Source: Corallochytrium limacisporum Hawaii
Lineage: Eukaryota > Protista > Pluriformea
Assembly (NCBI GenBank): GCA_002811645.1
Contig: PDIP01000036.1
Span: 124,001 to 188,000, forward strand
Reading direction: 5' to 3'
DNA length: 64,000 nucleotides
Shown here: piece after piece, positions 1 to 61,260 of the stretch
How the letters are laid out: each line of letters starts with the position of its first letter
Position numbering within the stretch: position 1 is the stretch's first letter
Notes under the pieces: generated by a model
Database searches by the model: none
Told to the model about the DNA's origin: nothing
What the model saw: the letters and a program-made list of their open reading frames with translations, nothing else
Made by a program: the position numbers and the translations under genes

Positions 1-1455
1 GGCCAAAACGATAAGCGGACAAGCACGAGCATGCGCTGGTCTCCCAACACAAAAACGCCTCGAAGCAACGAAGGAAGATCGCCGCTATCAACTGGAGAAC
101 CTACCACTCAATGGCGTGTGTAGGTCCCGTTTGTTATCGCGGTACTCGTCCTCTTCGCGATAAGTGTTCAAACATCATACAAAATGGCCTCATTTTTTTC
201 GCGGTTACAGATCAATCTCCGTGCAAAGCATTCTCAGCATGAATCAATGCCCTGCATCCTATTCTTTCAAATGTCCGTGCACCGAAACACAAGCGCCGGT
301 TTTCGTGTGGGTGTTGAAACACGAGCTCAGAGTGTGCTTGACTCGCTCGCTGGCAGAGACCCAGACAACAGCACACAGCAGCAGCAGCGAGCTCACTAAT
401 TGCCTGGCCGCAAGAGTCAAAACATCCCCCCGGGGGGCCTTCGTTTCGGCCGGCCGGTAGAATAGCCCTTTTTTATTTGGTCCGGTGCGCGTCCTGCCCC
501 GCGGCACCCACCCACTCCCTCCCCTCCCCTCACCCAAAACGAAAAACCCTGCCCTCCTCCCCTCCCTTCCGGCTTTTGGGTGATTGTCACAGTCTGGACC
601 CGCCTGCCCCCTTCGTCTCAAACTGGGCCCCCACCGAAAGTTGCTTTACAAGTTGTTGATTATTGAATCATCCCTTATTGCATATCTGAGATTGGGAAGT
701 TTGCATAGATAATGTACTGCTAATGTTGACCATAATTGGCCATGTATTGACTACGTCGGGTCCGTTTTGGGTTAAGTTTCATTTATCCCCGCATCATACA
801 CCTCCCCCGCATTACAAAATGATTACCTTTGATACTGAACAAATACAATATTACGCCCATGTCTGAATATGCGTCTAGGAATGCTGTGTGCTGTAAGTAC
901 TCAAAGACTAACTACCAGCACGCACAAACCCTTTCGTTCGTCTCCATGCTTCGGACTGGAAGGGCGGCTGCGTTACTGTCACAAGGGAGAGAGAATAGCA
1001 CAAGGGGGGAGACGAAGGCCACCGCCCTTTCTTTTTGGTTCTGAAAGCCCCCTCCCCCGGGCGGACTGGAACGACAGCAAAAACACCCCGAGCCGTCGGG
1101 TTTGTGGCAAGAGAAGAACGTTGAGCACGAAATACCAAACAATGGACAAACCCAAGAAAAAAGACAATAAGAAAGGTATGAGGAAAAATAGGAACCATGG
1201 AAAACGTCCGCGAAGGCTCTTCTTGTCCGTGTAAAACGAACAGAAGTAAATACACAAGGGCAAACAGGAATGTTCAATCTTTTGCTGGTCGCGGCCCATC
1301 TCAGTCATGTCGGGTCAGTCAAATCGAGCAGAGGGCTGCGGATGGTCCCGGGTGTATCACACACTCGCGTCGATGATGAATTGAAGAATCTCTATCTCGT
1401 CGGAAATTCCGATGGATGGTGTCACGTACACAGTAACGAGGGGGTACGCTTGCGC

Positions 1456-7559: not shown

Positions 7560-8120
7560 TGGCCAAAACAGGGGCTCCACGCAACCCGAGCGCTGCCGAT
7601 GAACGAGAGACTTCGGGAGGGTGCCGCTCCCTATACTCACGGTACCACTCCGCCGGCACGAGCGACCCTGGCACTGGTGAAGAAAGCAGGGCCGGGGAGG
7701 GAGGTGTCACGTCAGTGTTACGTTCAGGCGAAAAAAAAAAAAACTTTGGTTGAGAGCCGGTACTTAAGCCCAGGGTCCGGAGAGGACCAAGAGAGGGGAT
7801 CCCTTAAACCCCGCTTGGGGGAGGAGGGGGGTTTGAGGAAGGGAAATAAAAAAGAGAGGGGGGTTCTGCCCGGCCCCGATATCTCCTGAAGCCTACCTAC
7901 TCCTTGGCTAGGTCTTTGGGAGGGGAAAACTCAACGTGAAGGAATTTTTCTTAACTGCTCCTCCCCCCNNNNNNNNNNNNNNNNNNNGGGGGGGGGGGGG
8001 CCACGGAACAAAAGAGGTGTTTAACGGAAGGGAAGGATGAGAAGTTGTTTTGTAAAGGGGGCGGGGTTTCCTGGAGCTGTGCGGACTGGCGTTGGTTGCG
8101 GACGGGTTTTGGGCTGCAGG
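7560..8120. promoter_or_regulatory. Homopolymer-rich, ApT-poor island upstream of VMP1 (putative promoter)
   Basis: A13 and G/C runs, N gap; about 8 ApT in 560 nt by hand count; lies 5' of the gene. Confidence 0.55.
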
Positions 8121-10059: not shown

Positions 10060-10680
10060 ACTTTGCCTGCGTTTAGACCACGACTTCTTCCTCGCAGTCT
10101 GCTGACTCAACTTCGCCAAGTTTAGTCGTGTCCGCCTTGTGAAAATTCTGGGGGGCCGAACCGGACCCGACGGTTGCGGTCCCCCGAGAGTGTGTCCTGT
10201 TTGCCTCCTTCGTGACTGTATTCCTTTCGCTTGGTCTCCCCTTCCCAGCAGCCCTCCCTGCCCAGCTGCTGCCGCGGAGACGGAGAAACACCAGTATACC
10301 GACCGAAGCCAGAAAGGTACAGATTCCTCTCGACAACGGTCCAGCCATCGCCCAAGTTTCCGTACTAAATGAACGACTCACGCACGGTGGCTGCTGCGGG
10401 CTGCCGCTGCTTTGTTTCTTTTTTTTTTTGTTGCAGCTGATGCCAGTCGCAGCAGTTCCGCAGCCTTGGTCTCTCCGCTCTCCCGCTCGGAGCCTTGAGT
10501 GAGAGACCTCGGCCGGACGGAGAACTCAAGGGAGATCGCACAGACAGACGCGAGGGGACACACCCAAGGTCCCACCCCCCTCCCCCGGGGCGCTTCTCAG
10601 GATTTGCCACCGGTGGGCTGCGTAGAGTTTGGCCCTCCCGCCAGGGAAAGGGGGAGTGTGTGTTGAGGAAACAGACAAGC
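10060..10680. promoter_or_regulatory. ApT-poor island upstream of ubiquilin (putative promoter)
   Basis: About 9 ApT in 620 nt by hand count; T11 run, C/G runs. Confidence 0.55.
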
Positions 10681-12718: not shown

Positions 12719-13321
12719 ATGTCTGCTTCCACTGCTGGACCCTCTGAGAACCCCACCAAGGACGCACTTGGTGGTGTTATGAGAACCAAGACACAGCTCG
12801 ACGAGTTCTTCCAGAACAGCAAGCTGTTCAAGGCCGCTTCTGAAAAGACTAAGATTCCCCCTGAAGCTCTTGGATACATTGTTCTCGGTGGTGGCTTCTT
12901 GGCCCTTCTCTTTGGCTTCGGTGCCGATGTCGCTTGCGACGTGGTCGGCTTCCTGTACCCCGCATACTGCTCGTTCAAAGCTATTGAGACAATCAACAAA
13001 GATGATGACACCCAGTGGCTAATTTACTGGGTTGTGTATGCTGCCTTCTCGGTCGCTGAACACTTCTTCGACTACCTCTTATTCTGGATCCCCTTCTACT
13101 ACTTCACTAAGATCTTCTTCCTGATCTGGTGCTTCCTACCCGAAACCCGCGGCGCTGAATGGCTGTACAAGACTTTCATCCGTCCCTTCCTGCAAAAGCA
13201 CTCGGATAAGATCGATGCTGGCCTGGCAAAGGTTACCGGTATGGGCAGCACTCTCGTTGACCAGGCTGCTGATGCTATCTCTGGCAAGGCTGCTAAGTAC
13301 GCCACCTCCAAGAGCGATTAA
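12719..13321 (+). CDS. REEP5: REEP/DP1/Yop1 ER-shaping protein (REEP5/6-like)
   Basis: GFLYPAYCSFKAIE, DDDTQWLIYWVVY and WIPFYYFTK...W; AATAAA at 13372 downstream. Confidence 0.93.
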   Translation: MSASTAGPSENPTKDALGGVMRTKTQLDEFFQNSKLFKAASEKTKIPPEALGYIVLGGGFLALLFGFGADVACDVVGFLYPAYCSFKAIETINKDDDTQWLIYWVVYAAFSVAEHFFDYLLFWIPFYYFTKIFFLIWCFLPETRGAEWLYKTFIRPFLQKHSDKIDAGLAKVTGMGSTLVDQAADAISGKAAKYATSKSD

Positions 13322-14699: not shown

Positions 14700-15470
14700 A
14701 TCCGAGGTATCTGTGCCCCCAAAGAGAGCCCCTTGGAGAACCCCCCCTGCTTCGTGCCGCCCCCTCTCCCCCCCCCTTTTTCACCGGGTCACTCTTCCCT
14801 CTCTGCTTGCTCCGTTCCTCAGCGACGTCCCTACGGAGTCACTGCTGTTCTCTCCCCAAGGCGCAACCCAAACACTGGATGGGTACCCAGAATGGAGGGA
14901 AACATAAGGGGAGAAAGAAAAAATAAGATTGGAAAGGGAGGGAAGGAAAAAAAAAAAAAAAGAAGGACTAGTGTCTCTCACACCAACGCCGAAGCACGAC
15001 CCTTCTTTCAAAGAAAAAAAATATTCTATAAAGGGGGAGCGACCGACCAGCCGACGACAAGGCGGCCGTGCGTCCCAGGGGGCGATGGCGTTTTTGCACG
15101 TAACTCGAACCTTGAATCTGGTCCTGAATTTTGGAGATATTATGACAGAGATACAGCACTGATGGCAATGTTGTGTATCCGAATTTGTCATTCCGGTCGT
15201 GTCAGGACCTATCCGGCGACGGGTTCTCAAGGGCGCGGTTGCCAGCAGGGAAACGGCGAGAGACAAAAGCAGGGGCACGCCACGGAACGGAGGGGGCGGG
15301 TATGCCTTGCCCCCAGGGACGGGTGTGTAAGTGTGAGAGAGAGAGAGAGAGTGTGTGTGTGTGTTGTCTGTTTTCTCGTTCTGTATCTCTCTCCTCCCCT
15401 CCCCCCTCCCTCCCCGCCGTCGTCTCAACGGTCCCCCCCCCTCCCGGGGGACCTCCCTACGGTCGTTTAG
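14700..15470. promoter_or_regulatory. Low-complexity island upstream of IQGAP (putative promoter)
   Basis: Long A run, C runs and (GA)(GT) tracts, ending about 500 nt before the ATG. Confidence 0.5.
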
Positions 15471-21459: not shown

Positions 21460-21917
21460 TGTGGATAGATCCCAGTTAGCGGGGACCCAACGCTTCGCAT
21501 TTAATCCGACATATGTTGTCCTCGGTTAGGACACTTCGAGTGGAACAAACTACCATGCTCGTCCTTGGCTGCTCAAAGTCTCCTCCCATGGGTTTCAATA
21601 CCTTTCTTTGCAACAGACACCAATTCCTCTCCCTTCGTCGTAGAGGGAGGGCAATGAACAACAAGGGGAGGCACAGCACAAGACACGGCAAGGAAACAAA
21701 TCCTTCCCAGGCTCCAAAAGGTCAAGACTCTTTGCAGCGACAGTCCCAAAGAAAACACCACGTAGACATTAAGATTATGTAAAATTTGCGACGGACTCCG
21801 TATTGGGGCATGTGCGAAATTTATGAACAAGATGGTTAAACGATTTGAATTATGATGACGTCTGTAAAGTTACATGATGATGAAGAAGTACAATCTCCAG
21901 TGATGACAATAAACGAA

Positions 21918-23243
21918 TTAGAACAAGTCATCCAGGTCATCGTCCATGTCATAGTAGTCGTCTTCGTCTAGCATGAGTTCAGCCAGGTCGACCTTGTAGC
22001 GGAGCAGACCGCCGATACCTCCGAACCCCTTAACGAACTGTGATCCCTCCGGGCTCTTGTCGGTCACAATCTCCAGGGTGGCACCGAATTTCTTGTAGTT
22101 ATTGGCAAGCCATTCTAACAAGCTCACTTTCTCGACAACCTCGAGATCTGTTCCGGTCTCCTTATCTACAAAGTGCGTCCGGTCCTTCTCTTGCTCGGGC
22201 CGCAGATGAATTGTGGTGACCTCGTCGTTGGTAGTGTTCTTGAGATCAAACCGTTGGATATCGAGATTTTCCCATACGACAAGGGTCTCAACCGCACCCA
22301 TATCTAGGCATTTAAGGGTGTCATCCACCCCGAAACAGTACTTGCCCGTGTCCTGAGAGATCTCATCGAAGAACTGGTTGATGAGCTTCTTCTCCTGGAT
22401 AAATTTGACGTTTGCCAATGACTCTTGAGCAAGCTCGATGGCCTGGTTAAAACCGTTCTCGCCACCGTAGCTAACGTCGACAACCTTGATAATCTTAGCA
22501 GCGAGACGCTGATCGAACATGTCGGACTGGGAGAGTTCAGTTTTGAAGTCGGCACTACCCGCAATGACCAAGCCGCTCACATTGGGCTTGTCGTTGGTGA
22601 TGAACATTTGTGTTGCGGTCTCAGCGACCTTACGCACATAGTTGTGTCGCTTCTCCATACGCAAACGAGCGAAACGCAGAGCGGACTGACCACCTCGTCC
22701 GTGCTTTTTGGGAAGGTCGACTGTAAACTTGTGCATGACATCGCGAGTGTTACCCTGCAGAGTTCCAAAAAGTGCACCGTTACCATCCATAACAATGAAC
22801 CCGAAGCGATTGTCGTCAGCCAAGAGCTCTTGCAAAGCCTCTGTGTGGAACTTGTTGTCACACAGATATAACGATGTGTTGATGGGCTTGAAAGGTTCAA
22901 AATCAATATTGACCTTCTTTTCCTTACCTTCCTCGGTCACGATGGTACCGCAATACACCACCAGACCATTTGGGGGCACCTTGTTGAAAAGCTTGAGCTT
23001 CTGTTGCACTGACACAATGGCAGACAATACAGACAAGCGGTTGACACGAGACTTAATGTTCGAAGCAGTACCGTACTCATCGGCCAACATCTTGGACACT
23101 CGAGTAATCTGATCCTTTGGAGGAATAATAAGCGAAATCATGCTAGTACCGTTTCCGCGAGCCGCCTCTAGGTTGTAGATAAGTTTCTTGACCTTCCAGA
23201 TCTCGACATTGCGGTCTGTCGATTCTTCTTCCTGACCACCCAT
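21918..23243 (-). CDS. ETF1: Eukaryotic peptide chain release factor 1
   Basis: GTS, TASNIKS, YLCDNKF and GGQS motifs are intact. Confidence 0.99.
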
Positions 23244-23440
23244 GTTTATAGTGGGAAAAGGACGTACTGTACAAATTCCTTCCCAAAGAAATACAAGCTT
23301 AAGTAAATTTGAATGTCAGTCCAACCTTACGTACGCGTGTACGATTTCAAATAGCAACACGGTCTTGCACAACGTACACTTTCGGGATACCTAAGAAAGG
23401 AAAACATGCTTGAGACCTAAGACTGACTGTGTTTCCTCTT

Positions 23441-24240
23441 TCCTGCACTCTGAACAAATTCTGGTCTTCCCCGAGCTCTCGGCCTGCCCCGGGCACACTT
23501 CCCCTCGGATGCTTCCTGGTTAAGGGCCTCGTGGGTCTCACGAGTCGGTTAGAAGACGAAGCGTTGGAGAGAGATACAGAGAGAGAGAGGACCCCGCCCC
23601 CCCCCCCCTCCCGGGGGGAGGCCTTCCTGCCTTTTGGGCGGTGAAAAACCGTAGCGGATGGCTTGAGGGGTGGCGGGGCGATTTATTTTTTGGGTTCTCG
23701 GGTTTCCTTGCCTCCTCGCCCTCCGACACACTTCCCTTTTCCTTTAGTTCAGGCTCTCTCGCATGCAAACTGAGGCTTTTCAGTTGTCTCAAAGCTGTTT
23801 CCGGACTCTCCCTTTCTTTTTACTTCTTGCCTTGCTCCCTCTCGGTCTCAATCGCTCCTTGTTTTCTTGTTTTCTTTTGTTTTTTTTTTCCTTTTTTTTT
23901 CGGAGATTTAGTTTGAGTCCTTAAAGTCTCCTTTTACTTTTCTTACACCCTGCCCGTTAAAAGTGGTCTCCGTTCCGGAACCCAAGGGGAGAGAAAAGAG
24001 AGAGAGAGAGAAAGAAAGAAAAAAGTTTCAATACTGCGACAGCGTAGGAAATCTCACTTGCGCCCAGCATTGGAGCGGTGGAGAATGAAAACAAGCGCTC
24101 ACACTGCCTGCCAGCACCGCACCACACACACAGAGACACCGAGCACGAGCCAACAAAGTGCCCACAGTGTGCCGCCGCACAGCAGCGCACACAAAACTTG
24201 CTGCCGGGAGCTTGGCGGAAAAGGACCAACGTCAGTACAG
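23441..24240. promoter_or_regulatory. ApT-poor island upstream of eRF1 (putative, possibly bidirectional, promoter)
   Basis: About 13 ApT in 800 nt by hand count versus about 26 in the next 200 nt; C, T and GA tracts. Confidence 0.6.
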
Positions 24241-26451
24241 TCAGTACGGGAGGATGGCCGACTGTGTATTGATATACCTACGTATTCGAAGATGCGTGTA
24301 GTACGTTAGCTCCGGAAAGGGAGCAATATTCTGAGTGCGTCTGAAGTGGTAACATGATTTATACAAAGAAGTCGGGATATAAAATATATTTTCAAAATGG
24401 ATTCTAATCACAACGAATATATGGAGAATATATTAATCACAGAGGGCCTTGCCAGGTCCGGTTCCCAAAAGGACGCGCGTTCTGCCACCTGGATCTCATG
24501 TTCTCTTCGCCTCGTCGGTCCCCTCCGCTCAGCAGACACCCTCTGAGAGCATCATCAGCAAGCCGAAGACCCAAGATTTATGTCCTTCGTCTATGTGCCA
24601 GATGCATTTGGGGGTCATCATAAGCAGCATTGACAGAGAACCACTGGATCTATCCATTTTGACTCTTGATCTTGTGTACAAGCCTTCATCTGGACTACGT
24701 TCAACTTCGACATAGACTATGCTAAACAAGTATAGACAGATCAAGGTGAGATAGAATATGGACAATATGGCCCATCCACAACTCAAAGGAACGTGTCGTA
24801 ACCTGAAGAATGCCGAGGATTTGGCGCCGATACTTTTGGACCATTGGCACTTGTCCTTCAAAGTTGTCAAATGGGGGAACAAGGAGTTGGTGAAAGAAGG
24901 AATGTATAGGTTCGTTCGAATTCCTTGTTTTCCATACTTTGATTATGGCAGCCACCCTTTGCGTCCTTCGCAAATGACATATCGGAAGCAACTCAAAGTG
25001 TAAAACAGTGAATTCAATGAGTTTTTGCTAGATCTCCAGCCGCGCCACCTGGCTTGGCTCCGACAAGCGCACTTGCACGTACTGGTACTGAAAGCGAAAC
25101 GCCGCGCCCAAGGCCAAGAGGGCCCAAACGGGGGCCCCCGCCTCCAGCACCCTCCCTGTTACAAGCCCGTGCTGTATGGATAGGTGTGTCATCGAGGGTA
25201 TTGTCGTATCTCTCATCATCAACCACAGAGCCTCGCTTCAGCGCGGCGATGGTGAATTTCCTTGTATTTGGTATCTCCGAAACTCCAACAAAAAAGGTCT
25301 TACATTTTAAAGAAGAACGACCCCTTCATGGGAGAAAGTACCGTTGCCAGTCGGATTTTCTGGTTGGATTACAGCCGACATGTACCTGTCATGCTATATC
25401 ACCATCTGTCCGAGAGACTATGGCGAGTGTATAGATCATCGGGGGTACCCCCGTGATTTCAAACAGCTAGTCTCAGCATGGCCGTCCCCTGTCGCGAGCT
25501 GTCAAGAATGGGATGTCTTGCGCACTTTGTCCCTCTGTCCTAGCACCAGAGATTCAGCGAAAGCTGGTGTGGTCGAAAAGCAACACGTAGCGAAGTGTGT
25601 AAAGAAATTGATAAAAATGGTTATCCGGACTGGAAGCAGTGTGGAACCGTTCGGGTCATTGATCGTGATCGCCGTTCTGTGCAGCAGTGTTCTGGTGTAT
25701 GATGTTTTCATTTGTACTTTGCAGGTTGCTGACTGTCAAAACGTACCACAGTTGTGGCAAAGGGCGAAACAAAATATACCTTGTCTAAACTTTTCCATCT
25801 TTGCAGAGTAGGGGCAGCTCTGGCTTGCTCGAGATAGTGTGGGAACTCACCCTGTTGATATCTGCACCAAGGTAGCTGGATACACTGAGAATTGAGAACT
25901 TGTCTGCACCAAGTGCACCATAGTTCTTGGCAGTCCATCCCCACAGTGGACGCGGGGCTATAGTGAAAGTAGGGAGCGGGTTTTGGGCCCCATCCAAACT
26001 TTGCGAGCGGAGCCCTCTGTGGGGAGGGAAGGGCTGGGCGTAGAACAACCTGTGGCCGGCCTGGTGATCGGGTCAGTGGTATTGAGTCCATGTAGAGTCC
26101 AATGGCATGTCAAATTCAGAACGTTGGGAGCATCGTCTAACATCATCAAACCATTGCCACCTATCAGGATTCAAGAGATTATAGAAGGGGGTACAGGGGG
26201 TTGCCAAGATTTTGTTGATCAATATAATACAAACCAATATAGTTTCCGAGAAACGGTCAGCAAGACGAACCAACAACACAAGAAATCGTAGACAGAGGTC
26301 AGCCTTTTACGTTGGTGAACATGATATGGATGGAGCAATGCTTGTAATTTCTTTCGATATGGACAGGTGCGATTGATGTTGCCGACACTTGCGGCTGACT
26401 ATGCTAAACTGTATGATGAGAGAGTATTGATAACAGGACGCGACTAAGCAG

Positions 26452-26925
26452 TTAGAGCATGCTCATGTCAAGCTCAAACTTGTTGTCCTCCTTGACGAGA
26501 GCAAGGAACTCATGGTTCTGTGCGGTCTCCTCGGGAGAAGTGAACACCTCATAACGTGACTCAAAGGGAGAGCTAGCAATAGAGGAAGTAAACTCATCTG
26601 TGAGTTTGGGAGATAGCTCAAAGTTGACGGCCTCGGTTGTGGCTGATTCATCGAATGATCTGCGGTGAGAAGGCGGGGCGCGCTTCAAGGCCGCAACCAA
26701 TGCATTGCGAAGAGTAGCATTCTCTTCTTCGAGAACATCAATGCGTTCACGAAGTGCCTGTTTGTCTGTGTTCAATTCTTTAACATTGGCGGAAAGCTCT
26801 TCGATCAGCATCTTCCTGCGCTGGCGGCAACGCGCCGCTGCCTCGCGGTTCTTGGAGCGTTTTGCAGCCTTCTTGGCTTCAATGGCGGACATTTCCACGG
26901 GCGCGAGGGTCTTCTTGGGTGCCAT
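26452..26925 (-). CDS. bZIP transcription factor (Fos/ATF-like basic region); first ATG at 26925 (MAPKK)
   Basis: KRSKNREAAARCRQRRK (N-x7-R) followed by a leucine zipper (L-x6-L-x6-L-x6-L-x6-L); acidic Ser-rich C-terminus. Confidence 0.9.
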   Translation of the reverse strand: MAPKKTLAPVEMSAIEAKKAAKRSKNREAAARCRQRRKMLIEELSANVKELNTDKQALRERIDVLEEENATLRNALVAALKRAPPSHRRSFDESATTEAVNFELSPKLTDEFTSSIASSPFESRYEVFTSPEETAQNHEFLALVKEDNKFELDMSML

Positions 26926-27239
26926 ACTGTGTTTGAGGACTCGGCAGAGGGGATATATGAGAGTACGTCGAGTGCAGATTGCAAACTTTGAAGGTGATAT
27001 CACAGCCGGTGCGACTTCATCGTTGTTCCTGTTTGATTTCCCTACCCCTTGTCTGACTTGCTGTTGTATTTTGTTCAAATAGGCGGCGTGATCCTGTTCG
27101 GACTGACTCTACTGGCCTATTGGGATTGCGCAAACTCGCATCGGCCGTGGTGAACCCGACCCAGAAACGAGACACGACGAAGAAGGAAGACCTGCAGGGC
27201 CCTCTTCGCAACAAACAATCCTGACCTTTATGCCCCCCC

Positions 27240-27448
27240 NNNNNNNNNNNNNNNNNNNNNNNNNNNNNNNNNNNNNNNNNNNNNNNNNNNNNNNNNNNNN
27301 NNNNNNNNNNNNNNNNNNNNNNNNNNNNNNNNNNNNNNNNNNNNNNNNNNNNNNNNNNNNNNNNNNNNNNNNNNNNNNNNNNNNNNNNNNNNNNNNNNNN
27401 NNNNNNNNNNNNNNNNNNNNNNNNNNNNNNNNNNNNNNNNNNNNNNNN
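27240..27448. other. Assembly gap (N) within the island upstream of the bZIP gene
   Basis: N run flanked by C runs. Confidence 0.99.
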
Positions 27449-30400
27449 TCCCCTTCTTCCCGTTTTTTCAAGCCCCGACCCAGACCAGTCAGTGATGTCC
27501 CAACGCCAAGCCCTTTCTTCCATCCCTCTGGATTTATACGCCCGTCCGCAGGAGTGGTGAATACTCCCACTGCTCACCAACCCTTTTATCTGCTTCCCCT
27601 TTCCCCATTTCTGTCCGCTTCGTCCCCAATTCCCCATTTCGTGAGCAGTGCGGTGGCTAGTGGCTGCTTTAGTGGTGGGGAAGGGGAAAGGGGAAACGGG
27701 ATCCGAAGTGAGAAGGGGACCCTACAAAGCCATGGGTATTGTTCCCGGACTTAGATCGCTTTCCTAGAACACCAGCGGGAATTCCCTTCAGTGTTATCTG
27801 TCTAACTCCGCCTCCACCCACGTCTTGCGGCCCGCACTTAGTGGCTTCAGGATGTGCAAGATGTGCCCGCTGTGTGCGGTGTTTTCCTTGTAGATGCGCT
27901 GCGAATTATTGTACTATGTGAATTGACACCATTCCGCATTCCGATATCGCAACGTTGGCACATGTACTCTGTGGGAGACCGCGAGCTCTTTGCCTGTTGA
28001 GCAGGGTCAGCTACTATCCCGGGACTGAAGAACTGTCTTTAGGGACCTGCCAACTTCATAAGCGGACCATAGCTTTTGGTGTCGGGTTTGCGCAATCCCG
28101 CACGCACTACTCGGGGATTGCTCCCGCGCACCCCCAAAACAAAAACAACACAACGCGGGAGTTTTATCGCTTGATTTGAACGTGAGCAAGCCGATCTCCG
28201 CACGTTTAGCAATTGACCATCCTGCCCACGTTGTGGTCTATCGCAGTCGGCACGGAAAGACCAGGGTCCGCATTCCACTTCCAAAGTGCGATTCTTTCAG
28301 AGCTTCCACATTGGTTTGTTAGTTTCAGCAGACTTCGGACATTAGAAAACAGATGGGTGTTCCGATTCCTAAAGTATGAGGCCGACTGATATCCAATTGC
28401 GGTGGCCACCATCACCGATCTCTCACAGAAAACAGGGCGGCCTAGTGAGCATTGTAAGCAGATCTTAGTTCCAGTAGGTGCCACAGCTGAACATCTGAGG
28501 GAGGAGAAGTCAAGAATTCATGAATTTGCCAATAAATGCCATTCACAATGCATACCAACCTGCTCTTCTCGAGGGTTTGGCGCGCCTTCACAGCCACTGT
28601 TATTTAGTCGAGGCTCTGTCAGCACTTCAGGGTGAAACATTGATGGCGATTTGATGCCAATTTGGGTGATCTTGTACGGCCATGGATGGGCGATAAGACT
28701 CCTTTTCTGATCTGCTTATGCCCTCTTCAAGGGTCGGCGGGGCATCCCACACGTACGCGAATTTGCCGCCAATGTTCGACAAGCCAGTAAGACGAATACA
28801 TGATTCGGAAAGGTGCTCTGTATGTACCGTCTAAGGTCTTTTTTTCTTAAGTTTGGAAACATACACCTGGTAGGCAATATTTTGCTCCATCTCCTGATTC
28901 CGCCTTATGCACCATTTGGTGGAATACGAACCTGCACCGTGTCAAATATGCCGCAAACTAAACTTGAGAAAAAAGGGTGGCGACTGCCGTCCGAACCAGA
29001 AGTGATCTGGACCAACCTGCGTTTACTATCTTGATGTCATCTCGACGAAATACTCTACGCAAGCCGACTCGTGCGTAAGCGGGACTCCTGCTGTGCTACT
29101 CTCAGCCTCCCTTTTTCCACTGGGCACCCGTCCGGACAAGGCGGTGGTAGATGAAACAGCTACTTACCGCCTTTACCATGTCACAGTGTTCGTTTTGGGT
29201 ACGGTGACCTGTATGTTAAAGAGAAACTATGACTTCCGAGGCTCACATACACCGTGGGCTTCGCGTGGGTCACTTTAAGGGCATAGATTGGCTGCATAAT
29301 TGTTACTTGAAGTTGCTGCGGTAGTCGTTTTGCATCATCAGCTCTTACTCGAGACAATTCGGGTGGACAACTTGGCGAGGAAGGAGGACACGGTGGAGTA
29401 ATTGGCACATGAAACCAACGAACAATAGAGAAATCCACAAATTCCAAAGAACGCCTGCCTTCTAAATAGTGTCAAAAACTGACCACCATGTTAACCCTTT
29501 GCTCTTTACCAGGTTTGAAGCATCAGCGTTCACGATGTGCGGTCGATGTCCGAAACTACGACACCCTCAATGCCCAGTGCAGCTCGTCCTCTCCACCGAG
29601 GGACTAGGAAACACTGTAGTTTGAAGTCCCCCGGTTGAGGAAGTCGCCGGTGCGTTGTAGACGAGGTGTATTGATCTCAAGAGTTGCTATCCCTTCGACT
29701 GGCCAAAGTGCCCATAGAAAAGCCGATACCCTATCTGTTCCCATCTCGTCCAAATAGAGATGAATCGGAATCTCCTTCCCACCGCGAGCATGCACTCAGC
29801 ATAATGCACTGGCCATCAGTTCGACGTGTTCTGTTCCACTTCGAGAAGTGATATGGCAAACGTGTGGCACAACATAGAGCCCCCTGCCCAACTGGTCGGT
29901 TTGTATGAGAATGTTGGTCTGTACTAAGCGTTTTCTTGTCCAAGCGCAAGAGTGTCCATTTGTCCACTGCCATTTGGAGTGCGACAAGCCTTTGACACAT
30001 GACAGACAGCTCGTACATCCGCTGTTTTGACCATGCCGACAACTTTTCAGTGGCGACACAAGCTATCTTAAGTCTGCTTTGACATAAACGGGATCTCAAA
30101 TGCAACATCGGGGCTTCGAATGATCGCGACTGTCCGCTCAGTAAGCTTCATATAGAACTAAGTTAAGTCTCTTGACAGCTTTATGGATTTGTTCGACAAA
30201 GGTAATCAAAGAGCAGGGGAGGAAGCCCGGGAATTGTGTTGTATGTCAGCTTTCCGTTTGCGGTGGTGATTTGTTTCCCTTTCTACTTCCTCTCCCGTTT
30301 CGTCGTCCTCGCTTACTTTGGTGACAGCCACTGACAGACGACAGGGTAGCGGGCACGTTTGCTACTATTGAGTATTGGTCTCCAGGACGGTGGGAAGCCC

Positions 30401-33241
30401 GCACCCTGGATGTTTTGGTAGTAGGCCACAACAGTGGACATCACTTCCACAGTCGCGGCGAAATATGTCGAAGGCAATGGACTCCGAGAGAAGTTGTGTC
30501 CCGCCCAAAAAAGTGTGCTATGGGTGGATCAGTTACTTGTAAATTTCATCGGTTCCTGATTGCAAGAACCCAAGTGAAACAATGGCGAATCCTGGCTGGA
30601 ATGGGACATGGGATACTGCAAACCAACTTGTCTCAGCTGAGCCATCAAGTGCACGACTTTGGTTCCAATTGTTAGTACACCGGTGACCGATCCCCCGTGT
30701 TGTACGGTAATGGGGGAAGCACCTCCCGGACGTACGTTATGCCGGCAGCAGTTGGGCGGACCAAGATCAACGGCATCGACCATCTCGAGATATCCAAATG
30801 GAGACGGCAAGCCGCCCAGTTGAATGCGATGCCCACTGAGAGGTGTTCAAGAGGGAGGTCTAAAAATAGAGCCGTTGCAGTTTCATCGCTTTCATACGCT
30901 CCCCCTTTGTCATTGTACTGTGTATGTATACGGCGGCTTCAATTTTAACGAAGAACACTGTTCAGGTCCAATCTATTTCTTTCTTCTCCCCTGTGTTTTG
31001 TACGCTTCATCTCAACATCCTCCCACAGCAGGAGTAAACGAAAAGATATACTTTCATGGAAGTGATTACACCATTCCCCGCACCCGCAAGATCAATTGCA
31101 AACATTTCCCATATAATATGGTTTTCTCTACGAAGCGACGATCCCCAGACATTGACGACAATTTTTGTTACTATAAGCCTATGGTCAAGAGTCTTCCGTG
31201 CTGACGATTCAGGGTCATTTGGGTCATCCAGAGGCAATGAAGCGAGCATCCAACCATAGACAACCCTAGTATTCATGCAGCTAAATGCTCGGTGCAAACC
31301 ATTGGATTCGACATCCTGCAGATCATGTTATCTGCCAGTTAAATCCTCCCAGTGTCCACATGAACGATGGGTGGCAATGGCTTCCGAATGACGGGTATGG
31401 TACCATCCAAAGAATCTCCGCATCCATCGGCCTTGTCCGTCCGGACTTGAGCGGTACTCGTTTCGTCACACCTCCGTAATTCCCCGGGTGTGTTGTGTAT
31501 AAGAAACTTGTGGCCGTTTTCCGTCCTAATGCGCCTCACATACAATCTGTGACAAACAAGACGTCTTGTACAGTATTGTCACAGCGGCCGCTAAAGGGCA
31601 GATCCCCTTCCTTCTTAAACCTCTCGGGGGAATACTTCAGAACAAGTACACGCTTGAGGACATTCGAAACAGCCACCCAGAAAACGAAAGGAGAAGACGG
31701 GGGCGGAGGGGGGAAGAGGTGAGGAACGCCGGACTAGCTGTGCACTTCTTCTTTTTCCACACCGGCTCATGCGGTCATCGCTGTTGGCCTTGGTAAAAAA
31801 ACTACTGCGAATGTTTACCACGTTAGCAACTGCTTCGTGATCAGGACTTTTGACGAAGTGCCATCGATAACCTACTTGGTCACTAGCAGCTGCGGGACTC
31901 TCGAGGACATCCTCGCAGCATGGGGATTCTTGGCGAAGGAATTCAAATATGGAGCGGCTTAGCTTTGAATTCCCTGCAACGCGCGCCTCGTCGACGATTC
32001 CGAGCGACTAACCTGACTGTATATTCCCGCGCTGCCCCCGCCCACTCACCGCTTGCATAGCATCCGAAGTCTTCAGGAAAACGAACCTCCTGGTGTCAGA
32101 GGGAGAGAGAAACTATCTGTCAAATTTTGAAGAAACAAGGGGGACGAGTAAACATTTTTGTACTCGATACGACGACGGTGGTGGTAAGTATGTACTCCTG
32201 AGGCTAAATCTGTAGTCTCCACTTGAAGTGGCTTCGAGGACACAATAGGGGTGCGAGCAGTGGACACCACTCTGTTCAATGACCGCTTGTCGGTGGGCGC
32301 ATGAACCGTAATTCCTTCTCTGACGATTATTGAAGGAACAATCGTCACAGTAAGAAACGGAACGACGAGAAAAGTACACGACAAAGATCTTTATTCTAAG
32401 TGTGCTGGCCTCTAGTTGGTACTGGGTGCCTCAAGCGTTACAATAATCAGGTCGGCCCACCGCCGAGCCTGCATCCTAACATGCAACTGTCCGGGAAATA
32501 CCATTGACGTGAAACGGAAACCTGTAAGATTTCCGGCCCAGCATGAATGTGTACAGGAAGCCAACGTTAATTGAGTGTGTAGAGATCCCGAAATGAAGTG
32601 ACCGGGGTCCCTCCCCTTCATACTCTTTGCACCGGTGCCGACAGAATCGAAATCATAAATCAAATACAATCATTTGCATCAGCAAGTTTTTGGTCATTGA
32701 GTTCTCTGGCCAATACCTAAAATTGAAAATAGTAAGTATAAGTAAATTGAGCAGTCCTCGTTCTAGTCCATTTCGACAAGGCCGCTCTGGCGGGGGGAAT
32801 GGAGTTTGCGCCTTAACGAATTCGCTGCGACACCGAAGGGTAGGGGGGAGGGGGGTTGTGAATGCGAGCGCTTCTACGCTGGCTCTCATTTTTTTTACCT
32901 AGACTTTGGGACCCCTTCCCGCCAATATATGCGCACCAGCTTAGGGGCGCGGGGGTTTCAAAATCTATCGCGTCGAAAGAGCGTTGCCAACAAGACTGGC
33001 TTTGTGTCCAAATGGCCTAAAGGGCAATGGGGAAGGTCGGGTTTGGGTCAGGGAGTATGCCCTCAAGTTCGTGTCTACTGTGTCTGATCATTCCTTTGTA
33101 TCGATGCATATTTATAGTACACAACTTGATGAGTATGTGTACTGTTCTTCTTCATGGAGTCGTCACAGACGGTAAAAATTCCAAGGCAGAAGTATGGCAT
33201 GATTCAATTTGCTAGAGTCGATTAGATTCGCAACAGTGAAC

Positions 33242-37619: not shown

Positions 37620-39540
37620 CGAAACTGGAACCCTCCCTCCGCAGGCTTCGCCCCCCTTGCGCGGCTCCTCTCAGATCCCATTTTCTCAGATGGCGGTCAC
37701 ATGGGGGGGGGGGAGCCGGGGACCCCTCCCCACCAGAGCGGTTGTGGATACGATAGTATCAGCGATCTGGTTACATAACACATCCAGCTGTCTCTTTACC
37801 ATGGTCGACACCGCTGCGGTCCATATCGAATAAATTTGTTTCCCTATGATGTGTGCATGTTGGTAACGACTAATACACAATAACACACGCGCGCACTCAC
37901 TCACACAAACACACACACACACACACACTCTCTCTCTCTCTCTCTCTCCCCCGCGCTCTCACATATACACGCACATGCACACCCACACAACACATACGCA
38001 CATGCACCTACTTCTTTCACAAACAGTTCGGCCACTGTTCTCCCTCAGTCCCTTTGAGTTCTTTGCTCCTTGGCCTTCCAATGGTTTCCTTTTCCCGTAC
38101 AACTGCAGCCCAGCCGCCCTCCCCACATGGCATCCACACCGGTCCCTGCGTCCTCCCGCATAGCCCGTACCCCTTGAGTACAGCCCGCGGACGAGCAGGT
38201 GCCGGATCATACCCGTACGGCGCGCTTTTAACCCGGGGTAAGGCCCAGTGCCAGGGCGCCAGCAAAACTTTGTAAGTTTTGCCTCGCTACGTTTTGGCCA
38301 GTGGGACGCTTTCCGGTGTAGTCGGCTACGGATCCAGAGCGGGGCGCCGCTGCTGCAGCCCTTGGTGAGCAGGTCCGTGTGGTTTTTTTTTGGTTTTCTA
38401 AAGGTTGGCCTTGTATTAAAGGTAGACTCTTTCAAAAAATAGCAGCAAATTTGCCCTCCTCCCGTCCCCCGCTCCCTGCCAGAGCAAGGAAGGCCCCTCC
38501 CCGGGGGTGGTGGCCGGCCGCGAAGCAGAGAGAGAGAGAGAAAAAATTCCATGGCCTTCGCAGCCTGGCATCCCATTCTTCTCCTCCTCCGGGCCTATTA
38601 CACCGTGCGCAAAGACGGAGCGAAGACAAAATACACAGGAAAGCATTGGAGGCGAGGCGAGAATGACAACAGACACACACACACACACAAAGAGCCGTGA
38701 CGCCCTGCTCGCACACACCGACACCCCCGGGTGGCTCGTGGTCCCCCGGGGCCGCACGGGTCCGCGGTACTGGATCAGTGGGAAAACATTTCCCGGGCTT
38801 TTACTCCAAGCCACAAGGAAAATCAAGCAGTAGAACTGGCTCCGCTGGGCCCCCTCCCCATCTCCCTCCCTCGCTCGGTGGTGCGATAGGTTAAACACCA
38901 CCGCGGGGACCCCCCCCGGGGGAGGCGCCCGCGCAAGAGTGTGTTGGTATAATAAAGCCATAGCGTTCCCTCTCTTATTGTCCCCTGTGGCGGTGGAGTT
39001 TCACCTCTTTGGCCTGACCAACACCACACACCCCCCCCCCCTTCCCGTCAGCCAGAGGTGGACCGGGAAAGGAGACGAAAGGGGGCCCAAAGGGACGGCT
39101 CCCCCGCCCGGGTTTGGGGGGGGGGGGGCATGTGAGAGACTCCACCAAGCGAAAGGTTGAAGAGCAAAGCCCAGAAAGCTCAAAAAGCTTGGAGCTGTGT
39201 GGCCTTCCCTTTCTTTCCTCCTCCCCCCCGGGGGCCTCCCCTGCTCGCTCTTAATATTTTGCCCCTCATCATCCTTCCCGTCGTTTCCTTTCGGCTGTTG
39301 GACGAGTGGATTCTGTGGCGGTTTCTGCAGCCCCCGCGGTGTTTTCCATAATCTTTCTTTGCACCGCAGCGCGGGCTTCGAAGGATTTTTCCATCGTTGG
39401 AATGAAAAAAAATGGAATCGGTCTTTCTCATCGTTTGCTTGCTCCTGCGTGCCCTGCGTGTGGTGTGTGTGTGGGGTCTGTGCCGTGTGTGCCCTGTTTA
39501 TTGAGGGCGGCATCATCGTGACCGGGACACAACGGGACCG
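37620..39540. promoter_or_regulatory. Large low-complexity island upstream of GIGYF
   Basis: Multiple G/C/A/T runs, CCCCGGGG palindromes and microsatellites, followed by an ApT-rich leader. Confidence 0.5.
37883..37950. repeat. Compound (CA)n(CT)n microsatellite
   Basis: Directly visible. Confidence 0.9.
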
Positions 39541-39861
39541 AATCGTCTTGTTTTGTGGTACCGTGATCCGTAACCCCATATTCAGTGGCAGTGTGGCATA
39601 GAATTCCCAGCTTTTTTTCATGGAATCAGGTAGCCACATGTATGAGAGAATGTGATCGAGGGCAAACGGGTAGAAGAAGCGCTGCTCTGCAGGGAAGATG
39701 ATATGAGACCCCTACACACTCAGTGCCTCTAAAGGGTTTAGTATTTATTCATAGCTTTATAGATCAAGCGATATAGACAGGGATCACCATTGATCAGAAA
39801 AATTGTGAACTTGTAGAATATTGTTAATGGAACGGAGTCAAAGGAGACTCTAAAAACAGAA

Positions 39862-44414: not shown

Positions 44415-46978
44415 TACGACTGTTAGTCCCGTGTAAATATCTGCGGATTGTTTTGTGGTTGCTGTTGGTACGTGTACTATACAAAGTAGACAGTCTGTCC
44501 TACTCCATGCCTGAATTGAGAAGTGGTGTATCCTGACTGTGTATCCGACTGAACAGTGCTCACTATGAACTAAAGTATCCCGGCTGGAAGGGTCTCTTCT
44601 ACCGACGACGATCTTGGTATACCTTATCGGGGCATCTGATGTATAACAGCACACCATGCCCATTTTCAAATGCCGCTGACTCCCAGTTACCGTGGCATAC
44701 CCTATTACACAACCCAAATGTTACAAATGTACCCCTCGGTTGCCCCTTAGCACGACCCGAGTGACGTCCATCTGGGGTGCGGCTTACGTGCTTCTCACAT
44801 TCTCCCAACCGGGCTCTCGCTGCACAGATCGCCGGTTTTGCATCGCTCTCCCCCGTTTCGGCTTTTTCCATATTTTTTTTTTTTTCCTCCTCTTCGTGCT
44901 GGGGCCCCAGTGTGTGCTACATAACTCCCAGCCCGGCGGAGAAGGGTCCCCTCCCCCCCCCCCTCTGCTGCTGGCGGTGTAAAAATCTTTTTCTCTCTCT
45001 CTCCCCCTTTTTTTTTTTAACCTTGCGCAGTCGACGGGCAGGCCCCGGGGGCCGTCCCCTCCTTAATGTTCAGTACTGCCACCGGGCCAGGTTTCCAAAT
45101 TTAGACTCCCGCTGGGTCTGTAACCCCTCTTGCGTGCATGGAATGTTTTCCGTCACCCACTTCCGCATGCGGGTCTCCGCAAGGTATTCATTACGTCGTG
45201 CTTGTCATCATATTACTCCATACATTATATATCAACTATGTGGCGACTTCACGGAAACGCAAATTTAGGGACCTATCGAATCGCCGGGCCTCGTGCTTGT
45301 CGAAAACCCGTTCGTCAGATAGAGGGAAGGGGGGACCGGATGCACACTGGGGTACCTTCCGCTCCTCTCTCCCCCAGTCTTTTTTCAGTACCCAAAGGGC
45401 CCGCTCCACCGCAAGCCTTCCTCCCCCCCCCCTCTCTTCCTCTGTCCGGGCAGGAGGTTAGCCCGTGTGGCTTTTTTGGGCGGATCACTGGAACGGACTG
45501 TGACACAGTGCACTGTGGGGCCACCTCTCCGGGTGGAAAGTACCATTATTTCAATATAGATATTCAATGTTAAGAAAATATTCTTTGTTCAGGGTGCGTG
45601 TATGTTGCAACCCTGTTTGTGCCGGTGTGAGATGATGCAATTCCGGGAAAGCAGGAAAAAAATGGTTGCATCATGCGTTTTTACATGGGGATAACTCAGT
45701 TGATTTAGTACCGCTCGCGCTTAGCACTAATATGGGACGGGCACTAACGATTGAAGGGGGCCCCGGGCACAACGCACGACCGCGTGCCCGCCTGGTGTTT
45801 TTTTTATTATCTCTGGCGAGGTGCCCCGCTGTCTTCTTCCTATGAGGCTGCTTTTCGCCCGAGAAGGTTGATGGTCACCTCGGTTTTGTAAGGGGTGAAT
45901 ATATAATGAGTGAATATAAGAAGTCAGCCTCAACTCTGTATTCGTTCCTCCCGGGCTTGCCAGGCACTGTCCTAAAATGGTCCTGCTACCTTCCCTCCGG
46001 GGCCCCCGGGGGGGAGAGAGCCTCCCCCTTTTCGCTGGGGCCGGTCGGGTATCGGCAGACAAAGGGAGACACCTGCCCGCGGCAGCGGAGGAGCAAATTA
46101 GAAAATTAACCGCAAATTTGTCTTCATATTCACTATATAATCTTGGCAGATGCCGTCAAAGGTGACATGTCAGAGAGCCATACGGATGATGAAAGACTGG
46201 CAGAAATTTTCTCTTCTCCTGAGGTCCATGACCCACCTCCGGGAGAGCTGGCACTCAAGTGCACACTCGCCTGCGAACCGAACTAGAGTTGAGCCGTGCT
46301 GCCATCACCATCATCATCATTCGATTATACACAGAGCATCATAGCCAGCAATTTACATCATTGAATTCGCCACAGGAAAACTCAGAGGCACGGCCTTCGT
46401 CGGGTGCGCAGGATATTAGTACCATGGCTAGATGAAAGTTCAAAAATGAAATGATGATGCTGCACTGAGCCACGAGTTCCCGGTCACACTTACTTTTCTC
46501 GCTGTGAGTGCGAACCCTCCCCCGCTCTCTCTCTCTCTCTCTTCTGATTTGATTTAAACTGATACCCTAAACTAACATTATTAAAACCAATTAGACAGCA
46601 CTCTCCGATCGCCCTTCACCTGCCGAGTGAGCGGGCAAACAGTACATTCAGTATGAGACGCATTCTGCCACAATGGGCTGCCGGTACGGGCCGTTCCAAT
46701 TTCTTTACTTGCTATGTTTGTACACCCTCAGGTCAACAGCAGATGGTGAAAACGAGATTTGGGTGACCTTGCCAGCACAACAAAAACAAGTTCCCAGGGA
46801 TGGTCTAATAACTGCGCCGGTACTTCAAATGCCATCGTCTGATTTAGAGCAAGAGCATTGATCTTGAGGTGTCTGTATATGAAATGTATTTATCCTAGAG
46901 AAAACCAACGTTTCTGCGAGGCATGCGTCCGGTTTGAGATCTAGTACATTCTGGCCGTGCATATCACCCGCATTAGTT

Positions 46979-49903: not shown

Positions 49904-50264
49904 NNNNNNNNNNNNNNNNNNNNNNNNNNNNNNNNNNNNNNNNNNNNNNNNNNNNNNNNNNNNNNNNNNNNNNNNNNNNNNNNNNNNNNNNNNNNNNNNN
50001 NNNNNNNNNNNNNNNNNNNNNNNNNNNNNNNNNNNNNNNNNNNNNNNNNNNNNNNNNNNNNNNNNNNNNNNNNNNNNNNNNNNNNNNNNNNNNNNNNNNN
50101 NNNNNNNNNNNNNNNNNNNNNNNNNNNNNNNNNNNNNNNNNNNNNNNNNNNNNNNNNNNNNNNNNNNNNNNNNNNNNNNNNNNNNNNNNNNNNNNNNNNN
50201 NNNNNNNNNNNNNNNNNNNNNNNNNNNNNNNNNNNNNNNNNNNNNNNNNNNNNNNNNNNNNNNN
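49904..50264. other. Assembly gap (N) within the island between ZFAND1 and the 50820 orphan
   Basis: N run followed by G10. Confidence 0.99.
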
Positions 50265-60529: not shown

Positions 60530-61260
60530 CGCAGGAGGGGGGAGCGTGTTCCAAATTCCTGCTCACCAAAATCGCAGGGTCAGCCAACACCCCCCCCCCT
60601 CCCCCTTCACCGAAACCCGGACCCCCTCCCCACGGAATTCCCCCCCACCGGCAGAGAAGGGGATTCCCACCCAAGCAAAAAAACGAATAAAACGAAAAGC
60701 CAAAAAAAATAGACGGGCCTCCCTCCCGCCCCATTAATCTGCGCAGGATTATTTTTTTTTATCCTTGGTGTCCGGCCGGGTGAGGGAAGGGGTTTGAAAC
60801 GGACAAAGGCGTGTGTGTGTGTGTGTGTGTGTGTGTTTTTTTTTTTTTGGCCCCGTCCCCTCTCCGGGGCATATTTTTCTTTGCCTTTTTTTTTTCCTTC
60901 CTTTCTTTCGTTTGCTTCGGCTCCCCCCCCTTCTCTCTCTCTCCCCCCACCGCCGCACCGCAGGAAAGGGGCGAGTAAGAAAACAACAGTTCCTCCCCCA
61001 CATCCCAATAAACCACTACCACCACCGGCAGAGATCGTTTCCGGTACAAATTCTTTCGGTTTTGTTCGCACGTACGCCACAAAAAAAACTGGGACATACA
61101 CAGTGCATTTCATCACCACCACCAACCCCCTCTCCCCCGGGGAAGGGGGGAGGGGGAACCTGAGCCTGTTCGGACCCGCCTTTGTCGTCATCGCCGCATA
61201 CCTCATCGTTCTTCCGTGGAATGTGTGGACAGATGTTTATGGACAGGGGACCTTGGGGGC
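60530..61260. promoter_or_regulatory. Shared island between divergent RBM42 and cNMP-LDH genes (putative bidirectional promoter)
   Basis: Homopolymer-rich tract centred between two head-to-head ATGs (60302 and 61358). Confidence 0.6.
60811..60848. repeat. (GT)n followed by poly-T
   Basis: Directly visible. Confidence 0.9.

Follow-up and report, generated by a model that had tools for sequence, protein, structure and literature searches.

The sequence examined here is a 64,000-nucleotide (nt) stretch of the Corallochytrium limacisporum genome (positions 124001-188000 of one contig in an assembly of 24.11 Mb and 286 contigs), referred to below as the window, in which genes have low-complexity islands on their promoter side. 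A first-pass annotation had described these islands as promoters depleted in the dinucleotide ApT and bordered by ApT-rich leaders ("shores"), and had proposed them as the footprint of a promoter system based on N6-methyladenine (6mA). Our analysis indicates, with a probability of about 0.8, that the islands are ordinary low-complexity promoter spacers, and that the scarcity of ApT in them is mostly a by-product of their composition. The earlier interpretation was partly supported: its premise, an AMT1-dependent 6mA system, is true but already published for this organism, while the footprint of deserts and shores found no support.

ApT content of the islands and of upstream regions

The generality of the pattern was assessed in the window together with 200 kb of flanking DNA from the same contig (264 kb in total), which contains 94 open reading frames (ORFs) of at least 150 aa and 61 of at least 250 aa (long ORFs). 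Dinucleotide counts were compared with nulls of rising strictness, namely a mononucleotide shuffle, a shuffle of whole homopolymer runs (the control proposed by the first-pass annotation), a shuffle of bases inside 15- or 30-nt blocks, and a shuffle of runs confined to 20-160-nt blocks, which leaves homopolymers as well as local composition intact. Windows with at most 5 ApT per 300 nt were called ApT-poor. A set of low-complexity islands was also defined independently of ApT; this definition is strict and leaves out the island at 23441-24240, the focal island of this study.

Between -600 and -201 relative to the ORFs, where ApT occurs at about 44-48/kb and the GC content is 0.53, 57 upstream regions contained 969 ApT compared with 1004-1013 in homopolymer-preserving shuffles (ratio 0.96, z -1.7 to -2.1). 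The view of promoters as "ApT deserts" had been offered on the understanding that ApT would fall below the level of such matched shuffles, and at this ratio it could not be upheld. The ratio was 0.97 between -200 and -1 (66 ApT/kb, GC 0.46), 1.07 in coding sequence (58-59/kb, GC 0.51-0.52) and 1.08 in the first 300 nt 3′ of the stop codon (80/kb, GC 0.45, z +4.4 to +5.5). Nor was the deviation specific to the methylatable dinucleotide, as TpA, CpG and GpC were equally or more depleted. Under the homopolymer-preserving null their ratios in the upstream set were 0.77, 0.85 and 0.94, respectively, all below that of ApT, and in the ApT-independent island set ApT reached 0.80-0.90, TpA 0.67-0.77, CpG 0.78-0.85 and GpC 0.86-0.94. 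Among 52 upstream regions, z fell below -2.5 in three for ApT, in nine for TpA and in six for CpG, and the spread of the ApT z per region was somewhat wide (standard deviation 1.33). Of the non-coding windows 2.1% were ApT-poor, compared with 0.7% of the coding ones, and about one-fifth of the inter-ORF spacers held such a window. From a total of 30 ApT-poor stretches, seven were located in GC-rich coding sequence and approximately 13 at 290-950 nt upstream of an ORF. In non-coding 200-nt windows, ApT per kb was inversely related to GC content (r = -0.70).

Each of the nine islands named in the first-pass annotation is situated upstream of one or more ORFs (coordinates and counts of those discussed here are collected in Table 1). 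Its six hand counts of ApT, three of them in islands, were all reproduced exactly. The focal island, composed of C/T-rich tracts, poly-T, (GA)n, (CA)n and a CnGn palindrome, contains 13 ApT, where 43.7 were expected from the mononucleotide shuffle, 29.7 from the run-preserving shuffle and 19-22 from the local run-preserving shuffle, the strictest null, under which z was -2.0 to -3.0. This stepwise fall of the expectation indicates that the apparent 3.4-fold depletion comes mostly from three compositional sources: the lower share of A and T, the confinement of A and T to runs and the separation of A-rich from T-rich blocks. The three islands that had been counted by hand (7560-8120, 10060-10680 and 23441-24240) together held 30 ApT compared with 69 in the whole-run and 55-58 in the local shuffles with 20-40-nt blocks (z -4.4 to -5.1 under the latter, and down to -6.6 across the run-preserving nulls). 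The other six, listed without counts, showed simple observed/expected ratios of 0.67-1.21, and when pooled contained 201 ApT compared with 226 (whole-run) and 197 (local), with individual p values of 0.1-0.8. The observation behind the earlier interpretation was therefore partly confirmed: the island architecture is real, and three of the nine islands are depleted in ApT beyond their base and homopolymer composition, but the other six are not, so the contrast is not general.

In the three counted islands TpA was as low as ApT. CpG had been described as not depleted, which holds for its simple observed/expected ratio (0.70-0.81, near the window mean of 0.81) but not against run-preserving shuffles, where CpG reached 115/157 (0.73), TpA 39/69 (0.57) and GpC 132/158 (0.84) of expectation. 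At the same time AG, CT, GA and TC each exceeded expectation (z +3.5 to +6.8), a pattern characteristic of DNA with purine/pyrimidine (R/Y) tracts and GA/CT microsatellites.

Shores, leaders and 3′ flanks

The ApT-rich shores fared no better when the flanks of the islands were considered at large. Around 19 ApT-poor stretches of non-coding sequence, the flanking DNA had a mean of 59 ApT/kb compared with a non-coding background of 57, and leaders as a class stood at 0.97 of expectation, as given above for the last 200 nt before the ORFs. The true leaders of eight genes of the window ranged from 41 to 93 ApT/kb. Near the upper end of this range, the leader at 39601-39860 contains 24 ApT compared with 21-23 in shuffles (observed/expected 1.07), and its ApT richness is only in line with its GC content of 0.41. 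The RNA-supported 3′ untranslated regions (UTRs) of eRF1 and of the bZIP gene reached 119 and 91 ApT/kb, respectively, compared with 46 in the eRF1 leader. ApT richness is therefore a general trait of A/T-rich UTR-type DNA that is stronger at 3′ ends. The 3′ flanks were the most ApT-rich class, above the 5′ leaders, and A/T-rich polyadenylation signals may be the cause.

The shore next to the focal island (24241-24440) proved to be a poor example of a leader. Its 26 ApT consist mostly of WATW (15) and TAT/ATA (18) contexts, with only three in SATS; according to published nanopore data, W-flanked and TAT sites carry hardly any methylation in this species (PMC12695648). No transcript-like contig was found between 23289 and 26330, and the seven ORFs of 24449-26291 had no Pfam match. 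The shore is single copy in the genome. The region 24241-26330 is about 2 kb of single-copy DNA of normal complexity with no ORF above 155 aa, and belongs to a gene-poor stretch that reaches 33200. A gene-poor stretch of this size (24241-33200) is unusual in the otherwise compact contig. No Rfam family and no tRNA was found in the whole window.

The 6mA system and its substrate

A six-frame search of the whole genome revealed exactly two MT-A70 genes, both outside the window (L001:913-2013 and L002:631-2187). The L001 protein has an intact DPPW catalytic motif and scored 238 bits to the Tetrahymena MTA1/AMT1 structures compared with 134 to METTL3, while L002 encodes a protein with a degenerate DAPW in place of DPPW, whose best match among solved structures was MTA9/AMT7. 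The ortholog search proposed in the first-pass annotation thus returned one AMT1 and one non-catalytic AMT6/7 (MTA9) partner, both encoded by this genome. The two proteins are identical to EukProt Clim_evm86s157 and Clim_evm3s199, respectively, which are the two C. limacisporum leaves of the published MT-A70 tree (PMC12695648). The same study lists one AMT1 and one AMT6/7 for this species and none of AMT2/5, METTL4, METTL3 and METTL14 (PMC12695648). In agreement with that table, no METTL3- or METTL14-type gene was matched in our six-frame MT-A70 search of the whole genome; if this absence holds, C. limacisporum would be without the canonical writer of N6-methyladenosine in mRNA.

The first-pass annotation was right in assuming a 6mA-at-ApT system near transcription start sites (TSSs), as 6mA has been mapped in this organism. 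According to the nanopore data, 6mA occupies 1.24% of ApT overall with a strand-symmetry correlation of 0.50, and its level depends on context (SmATS 2.39%, WmATW 0.20%, TmAT 0.13%), so that S-flanked ApT is methylated twelve times as often as W-flanked ApT (PMC12695648). By region, the level is 1.45% in promoters, 4.8% in the 500 bp after the TSS and 0.7% at transcript ends; 87.7% of the assessed genes are methylated, 5-methylcytosine is absent and the genome-wide ApT observed/expected ratio is 0.98 (PMC12695648). Since promoters show a three-fold lower level of methylation per ApT than the DNA following the TSS, the low 6mA of promoters reflects targeting rather than missing ApT.

The relation between 6mA and ApT composition has been considered before. 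For every species studied, ApT content around TSSs was plotted together with 6mA (Extended Data Fig. 7 of PMC12695648), no clear association between the two was seen in most species (PMC12695648, Nat Genet 2025), and the ApT peaks at gene starts were attributed to the ATG itself (PMC12695648). In Rhizopus microsporus, 6mA frequency was likewise not correlated with ApT density (PMC12019607). The density of SATS was 9-10/kb in upstream regions, increased to 14-15/kb in the leaders and reached 20-23/kb within coding sequence, which indicates that the substrate-rich DNA is the gene body and not the leader.

Both genes, and the organism itself, are those of the AMT1 (MTA1)-AMT6/7 (MTA9) pathway described for C. 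limacisporum and 14 other AMT1-encoding eukaryotes, in which symmetric 6mA occurs at ApT, with enrichment over the first 500 bp downstream of the TSS (PMC12695648). The claim of deserts with shores is absent from that paper and was not borne out by the sequence analysed here.

Island architecture, alternatives and meaning

Around the 61 long ORFs, low-complexity classes were enriched 5-10-fold between -1000 and -200. Poly-G/C runs of at least 5 nt made up about 4% of the bases at -700 to -300 compared with 0.1-0.5% in coding sequence, R/Y tracts of at least 12 nt 5-9% at -1000 to -300 compared with at most 1%, and microsatellites 3-4% at -1000 to -400 compared with 0-0.5%. All three fell sharply at about -200 and were low both in the leaders and in the first 200 nt past stop codons, i.e. 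the enrichment of homopolymers and tracts was restricted to the promoter side; short convergent spacers contained no ApT-poor windows. C-runs followed by G-runs (CnGn, palindrome-like), which occur repeatedly in the promoter-side islands, were far more frequent than the reverse order, GnCn (17 versus 2 in 264 kb, two-sided binomial p ~0.0007). The CnGn palindromes have the appearance of a genuine promoter motif with a fixed orientation, or of an element that forms a structure, and could represent an undescribed core promoter element of the C. limacisporum lineage. Transcript-shaped contigs, present over eRF1 in two public runs (21792-23288) and over the bZIP gene, had their 5′ ends at 23288 and 26956, about 150-220 nt outside the islands (about 150 nt for eRF1). 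These two contigs do not fix the TSS position, but their ends fit the islands being untranscribed upstream promoter DNA.

Promoters rich in poly(dA:dT) and poly(dG:dC) are nucleosome-depleted in yeasts and other compact genomes. The islands resemble them in that the tracts occur on the promoter side only and end shortly before the transcribed region, and differ in that G/C contributes as much as A/T to the tracts, which lie in GC-rich DNA and are accompanied by CnGn palindromes and R/Y microsatellites. Considering these results, we infer that the islands are nucleosome-disfavouring, factor-binding promoter DNA. They are most likely the promoter-side parts of intergenic spacers in a compact genome. 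They are GC-rich (0.53-0.59), consist mainly of homopolymer runs, R/Y tracts, microsatellites and CnGn palindromes, and give way to A/T-rich UTR-type DNA some 200 nt upstream of the ATG. ApT would be scarce in them for the three reasons given for the focal island and, in addition, because R-R and Y-Y steps are favoured over R-Y or Y-R, while the shores would be ApT-rich because UTR-like DNA is A/T-rich, at the 5′ and still more at the 3′ side. ApT after the TSS is methylated through AMT1-AMT6/7, as published (PMC12695648). Targeting places the mark, most likely in connection with H3K4me3 or transcription, and not ApT density; it falls mainly on S-flanked ApT, which is densest in coding sequence.

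The islands could instead have arisen neutrally, through replication slippage and biased mutation in spacers that are not transcribed, and have no promoter function; the scarcity of ApT would then be a by-product all the same. Islands made of runs and microsatellites, with assembly gaps inside, are what slippage would leave behind, but low complexity is concentrated on the promoter side and scarce just past stop codons, ApT-poor windows are missing from short convergent spacers, and the 17:2 bias of CnGn over GnCn is not predicted by slippage alone. We therefore consider this explanation unlikely.

Several observations weigh against the view of the islands as promoter spacers whose ApT scarcity is compositional. 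The three counted islands remained about two-fold poor in ApT even under the strictest null (30 versus 55-58), ApT showed the largest ratio drop among their dinucleotides, and relative to the genome baseline ApT drops more than TpA. The odds ratio of R-Y steps was 0.38 in these islands compared with 1.4-1.5 in coding sequence, and SATS, the preferred methylation context, is about two-fold rarer in upstream regions than in coding sequence. Moreover, the sampled DNA comes from one contig and amounts to 1.1% of the genome, and gene starts were represented by ORF proxies. The residue at the three islands is incompletely explained by composition and is recorded here as such. One way of reading it is that a minority of promoters, such as these three, is kept free of ApT beyond composition, by which the AMT1 substrate would be kept out of the nucleosome-free region and a sharp 6mA boundary would form at the +1 nucleosome. 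The presence of AMT1 and 6mA, the depletion that persists under local homopolymer-preserving shuffles, the three of 52 upstream regions beyond z = -2.5 and the somewhat wide spread across regions speak for this idea. However, the corresponding tails are heavier for TpA and CpG than for ApT, the three depleted islands are precisely those that the first-pass annotation had counted, the already three-fold lower methylation per ApT in promoters means that targeting needs no absence of ApT, and most species show no clear association of ApT with 6mA (PMC12695648). Avoidance in a minority of promoters thus seems improbable, somewhat more so than slippage. An artefact of sequencing or assembling DNA rich in homopolymers, suggested by the runs of N within four low-complexity stretches, is hardly credible, as the ApT-poor sequence is mostly unambiguous and outside gaps and the same architecture recurs over 264 kb.

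Table 1. Positions of the islands, leaders, genes and sequence elements discussed in the text (window coordinates unless a locus is given)
Feature	Position	Strand	Remarks
Focal island	23441-24240	.	promoter side of eRF1; 13 ApT, 16/kb, observed/expected 0.30, GC 0.53
Non-repetitive part of focal island	24121-24240	.	0 ApT, GC 0.59
Island upstream of VTT-domain (VMP1-like) gene	7560-8120	.	GC 0.56; 8 ApT, 14.3/kb, 18-23 expected; assembly gap bordered by a C-run and a G-run
Island upstream of ubiquilin gene	10060-10680	.	GC 0.59; 9 ApT, 14.5/kb, 19-25 expected; 9 TpA
Island upstream of IQGAP	14700-15470	.	25 ApT, 29-33 expected, p 0.03-0.2; not ApT-depleted against matched shuffles
Island on promoter side of bZIP gene	27180-27720	.	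12 ApT, 12.5-16 expected
Island upstream of GYF-domain gene	37620-39540	.	69 ApT, 70-77 expected; not ApT-depleted
A/T-rich "shore"	24241-24440	.	26 ApT (130/kb), 23 TpA, GC 0.38; TATA-like runs; no gene attached
eRF1 leader and proximal promoter	23244-23440	-	9 ApT, 46/kb, GC 0.40; not ApT-rich
5′ leader of GYF-domain gene	39601-39860	+	24 ApT, 92/kb, GC 0.41; ATG at 39862
C12-TCCC-G6 palindrome-like CnGn element	23597-23618	.	inside focal island (pattern scan)
CnGn across N gap	7964-8000
CnGn elements in island 37620-39540	38910-38922, 39223-39234
Other CnGn elements of the window	426-437, 15433-15450, 46003-46014, 61134-61150
eRF1 gene	21918-23243	-	Pfam eRF1_1/2/3; sole gene shown downstream of focal island
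bZIP gene	26452-27078	-	Pfam bZIP_1; RNA-like contigs 26331-26956
REEP5	12719-13321		away from the region right of the focal island
Runs of N	2689-2704, 7969-7987, 27240-27448, 49904-50264		all in low-complexity/homopolymer stretches
AMT1	L001:1009-2010		334 aa; intact DPPW; Pfam MT-A70, 131 bits
AMT6/7-type partner	L002:691-2184		498 aa; degenerate DAPW instead of DPPW

The four runs of N listed in Table 1 are likely assembly gaps due to the surrounding repeats. In one of the two public runs, the contigs carried single-base changes (three over eRF1 and eight over the bZIP gene), and this run presumably derives from a second strain of the same species.

The islands had also been likened to an inverse form of vertebrate CpG islands, with which they share the character of promoter-linked compositional domains having a distinctive frequency of a methylatable dinucleotide. 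In CpG islands, however, the CpG observed/expected ratio deviates specifically from that of the flanks by a known mutational mechanism, whereas in C. limacisporum the deviation of ApT vanishes once homopolymers and composition are matched (0.96) and other dinucleotides deviate more. As the deviation was not general, not specific to ApT and not accompanied by enriched shores, the analogy does not hold.

If true, ApT deserts would have given eukaryotic adenine methylation its first "grammar" at the sequence level, on a par with CpG islands, but the data argue against them. The case calls for caution in that a dinucleotide desert in low-complexity DNA must be tested with shuffles that preserve homopolymers and blocks, and compared with the remaining dinucleotides. 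The analysis also documents how promoter islands, with their CnGn palindromes, are organised in a single-celled relative of animals.

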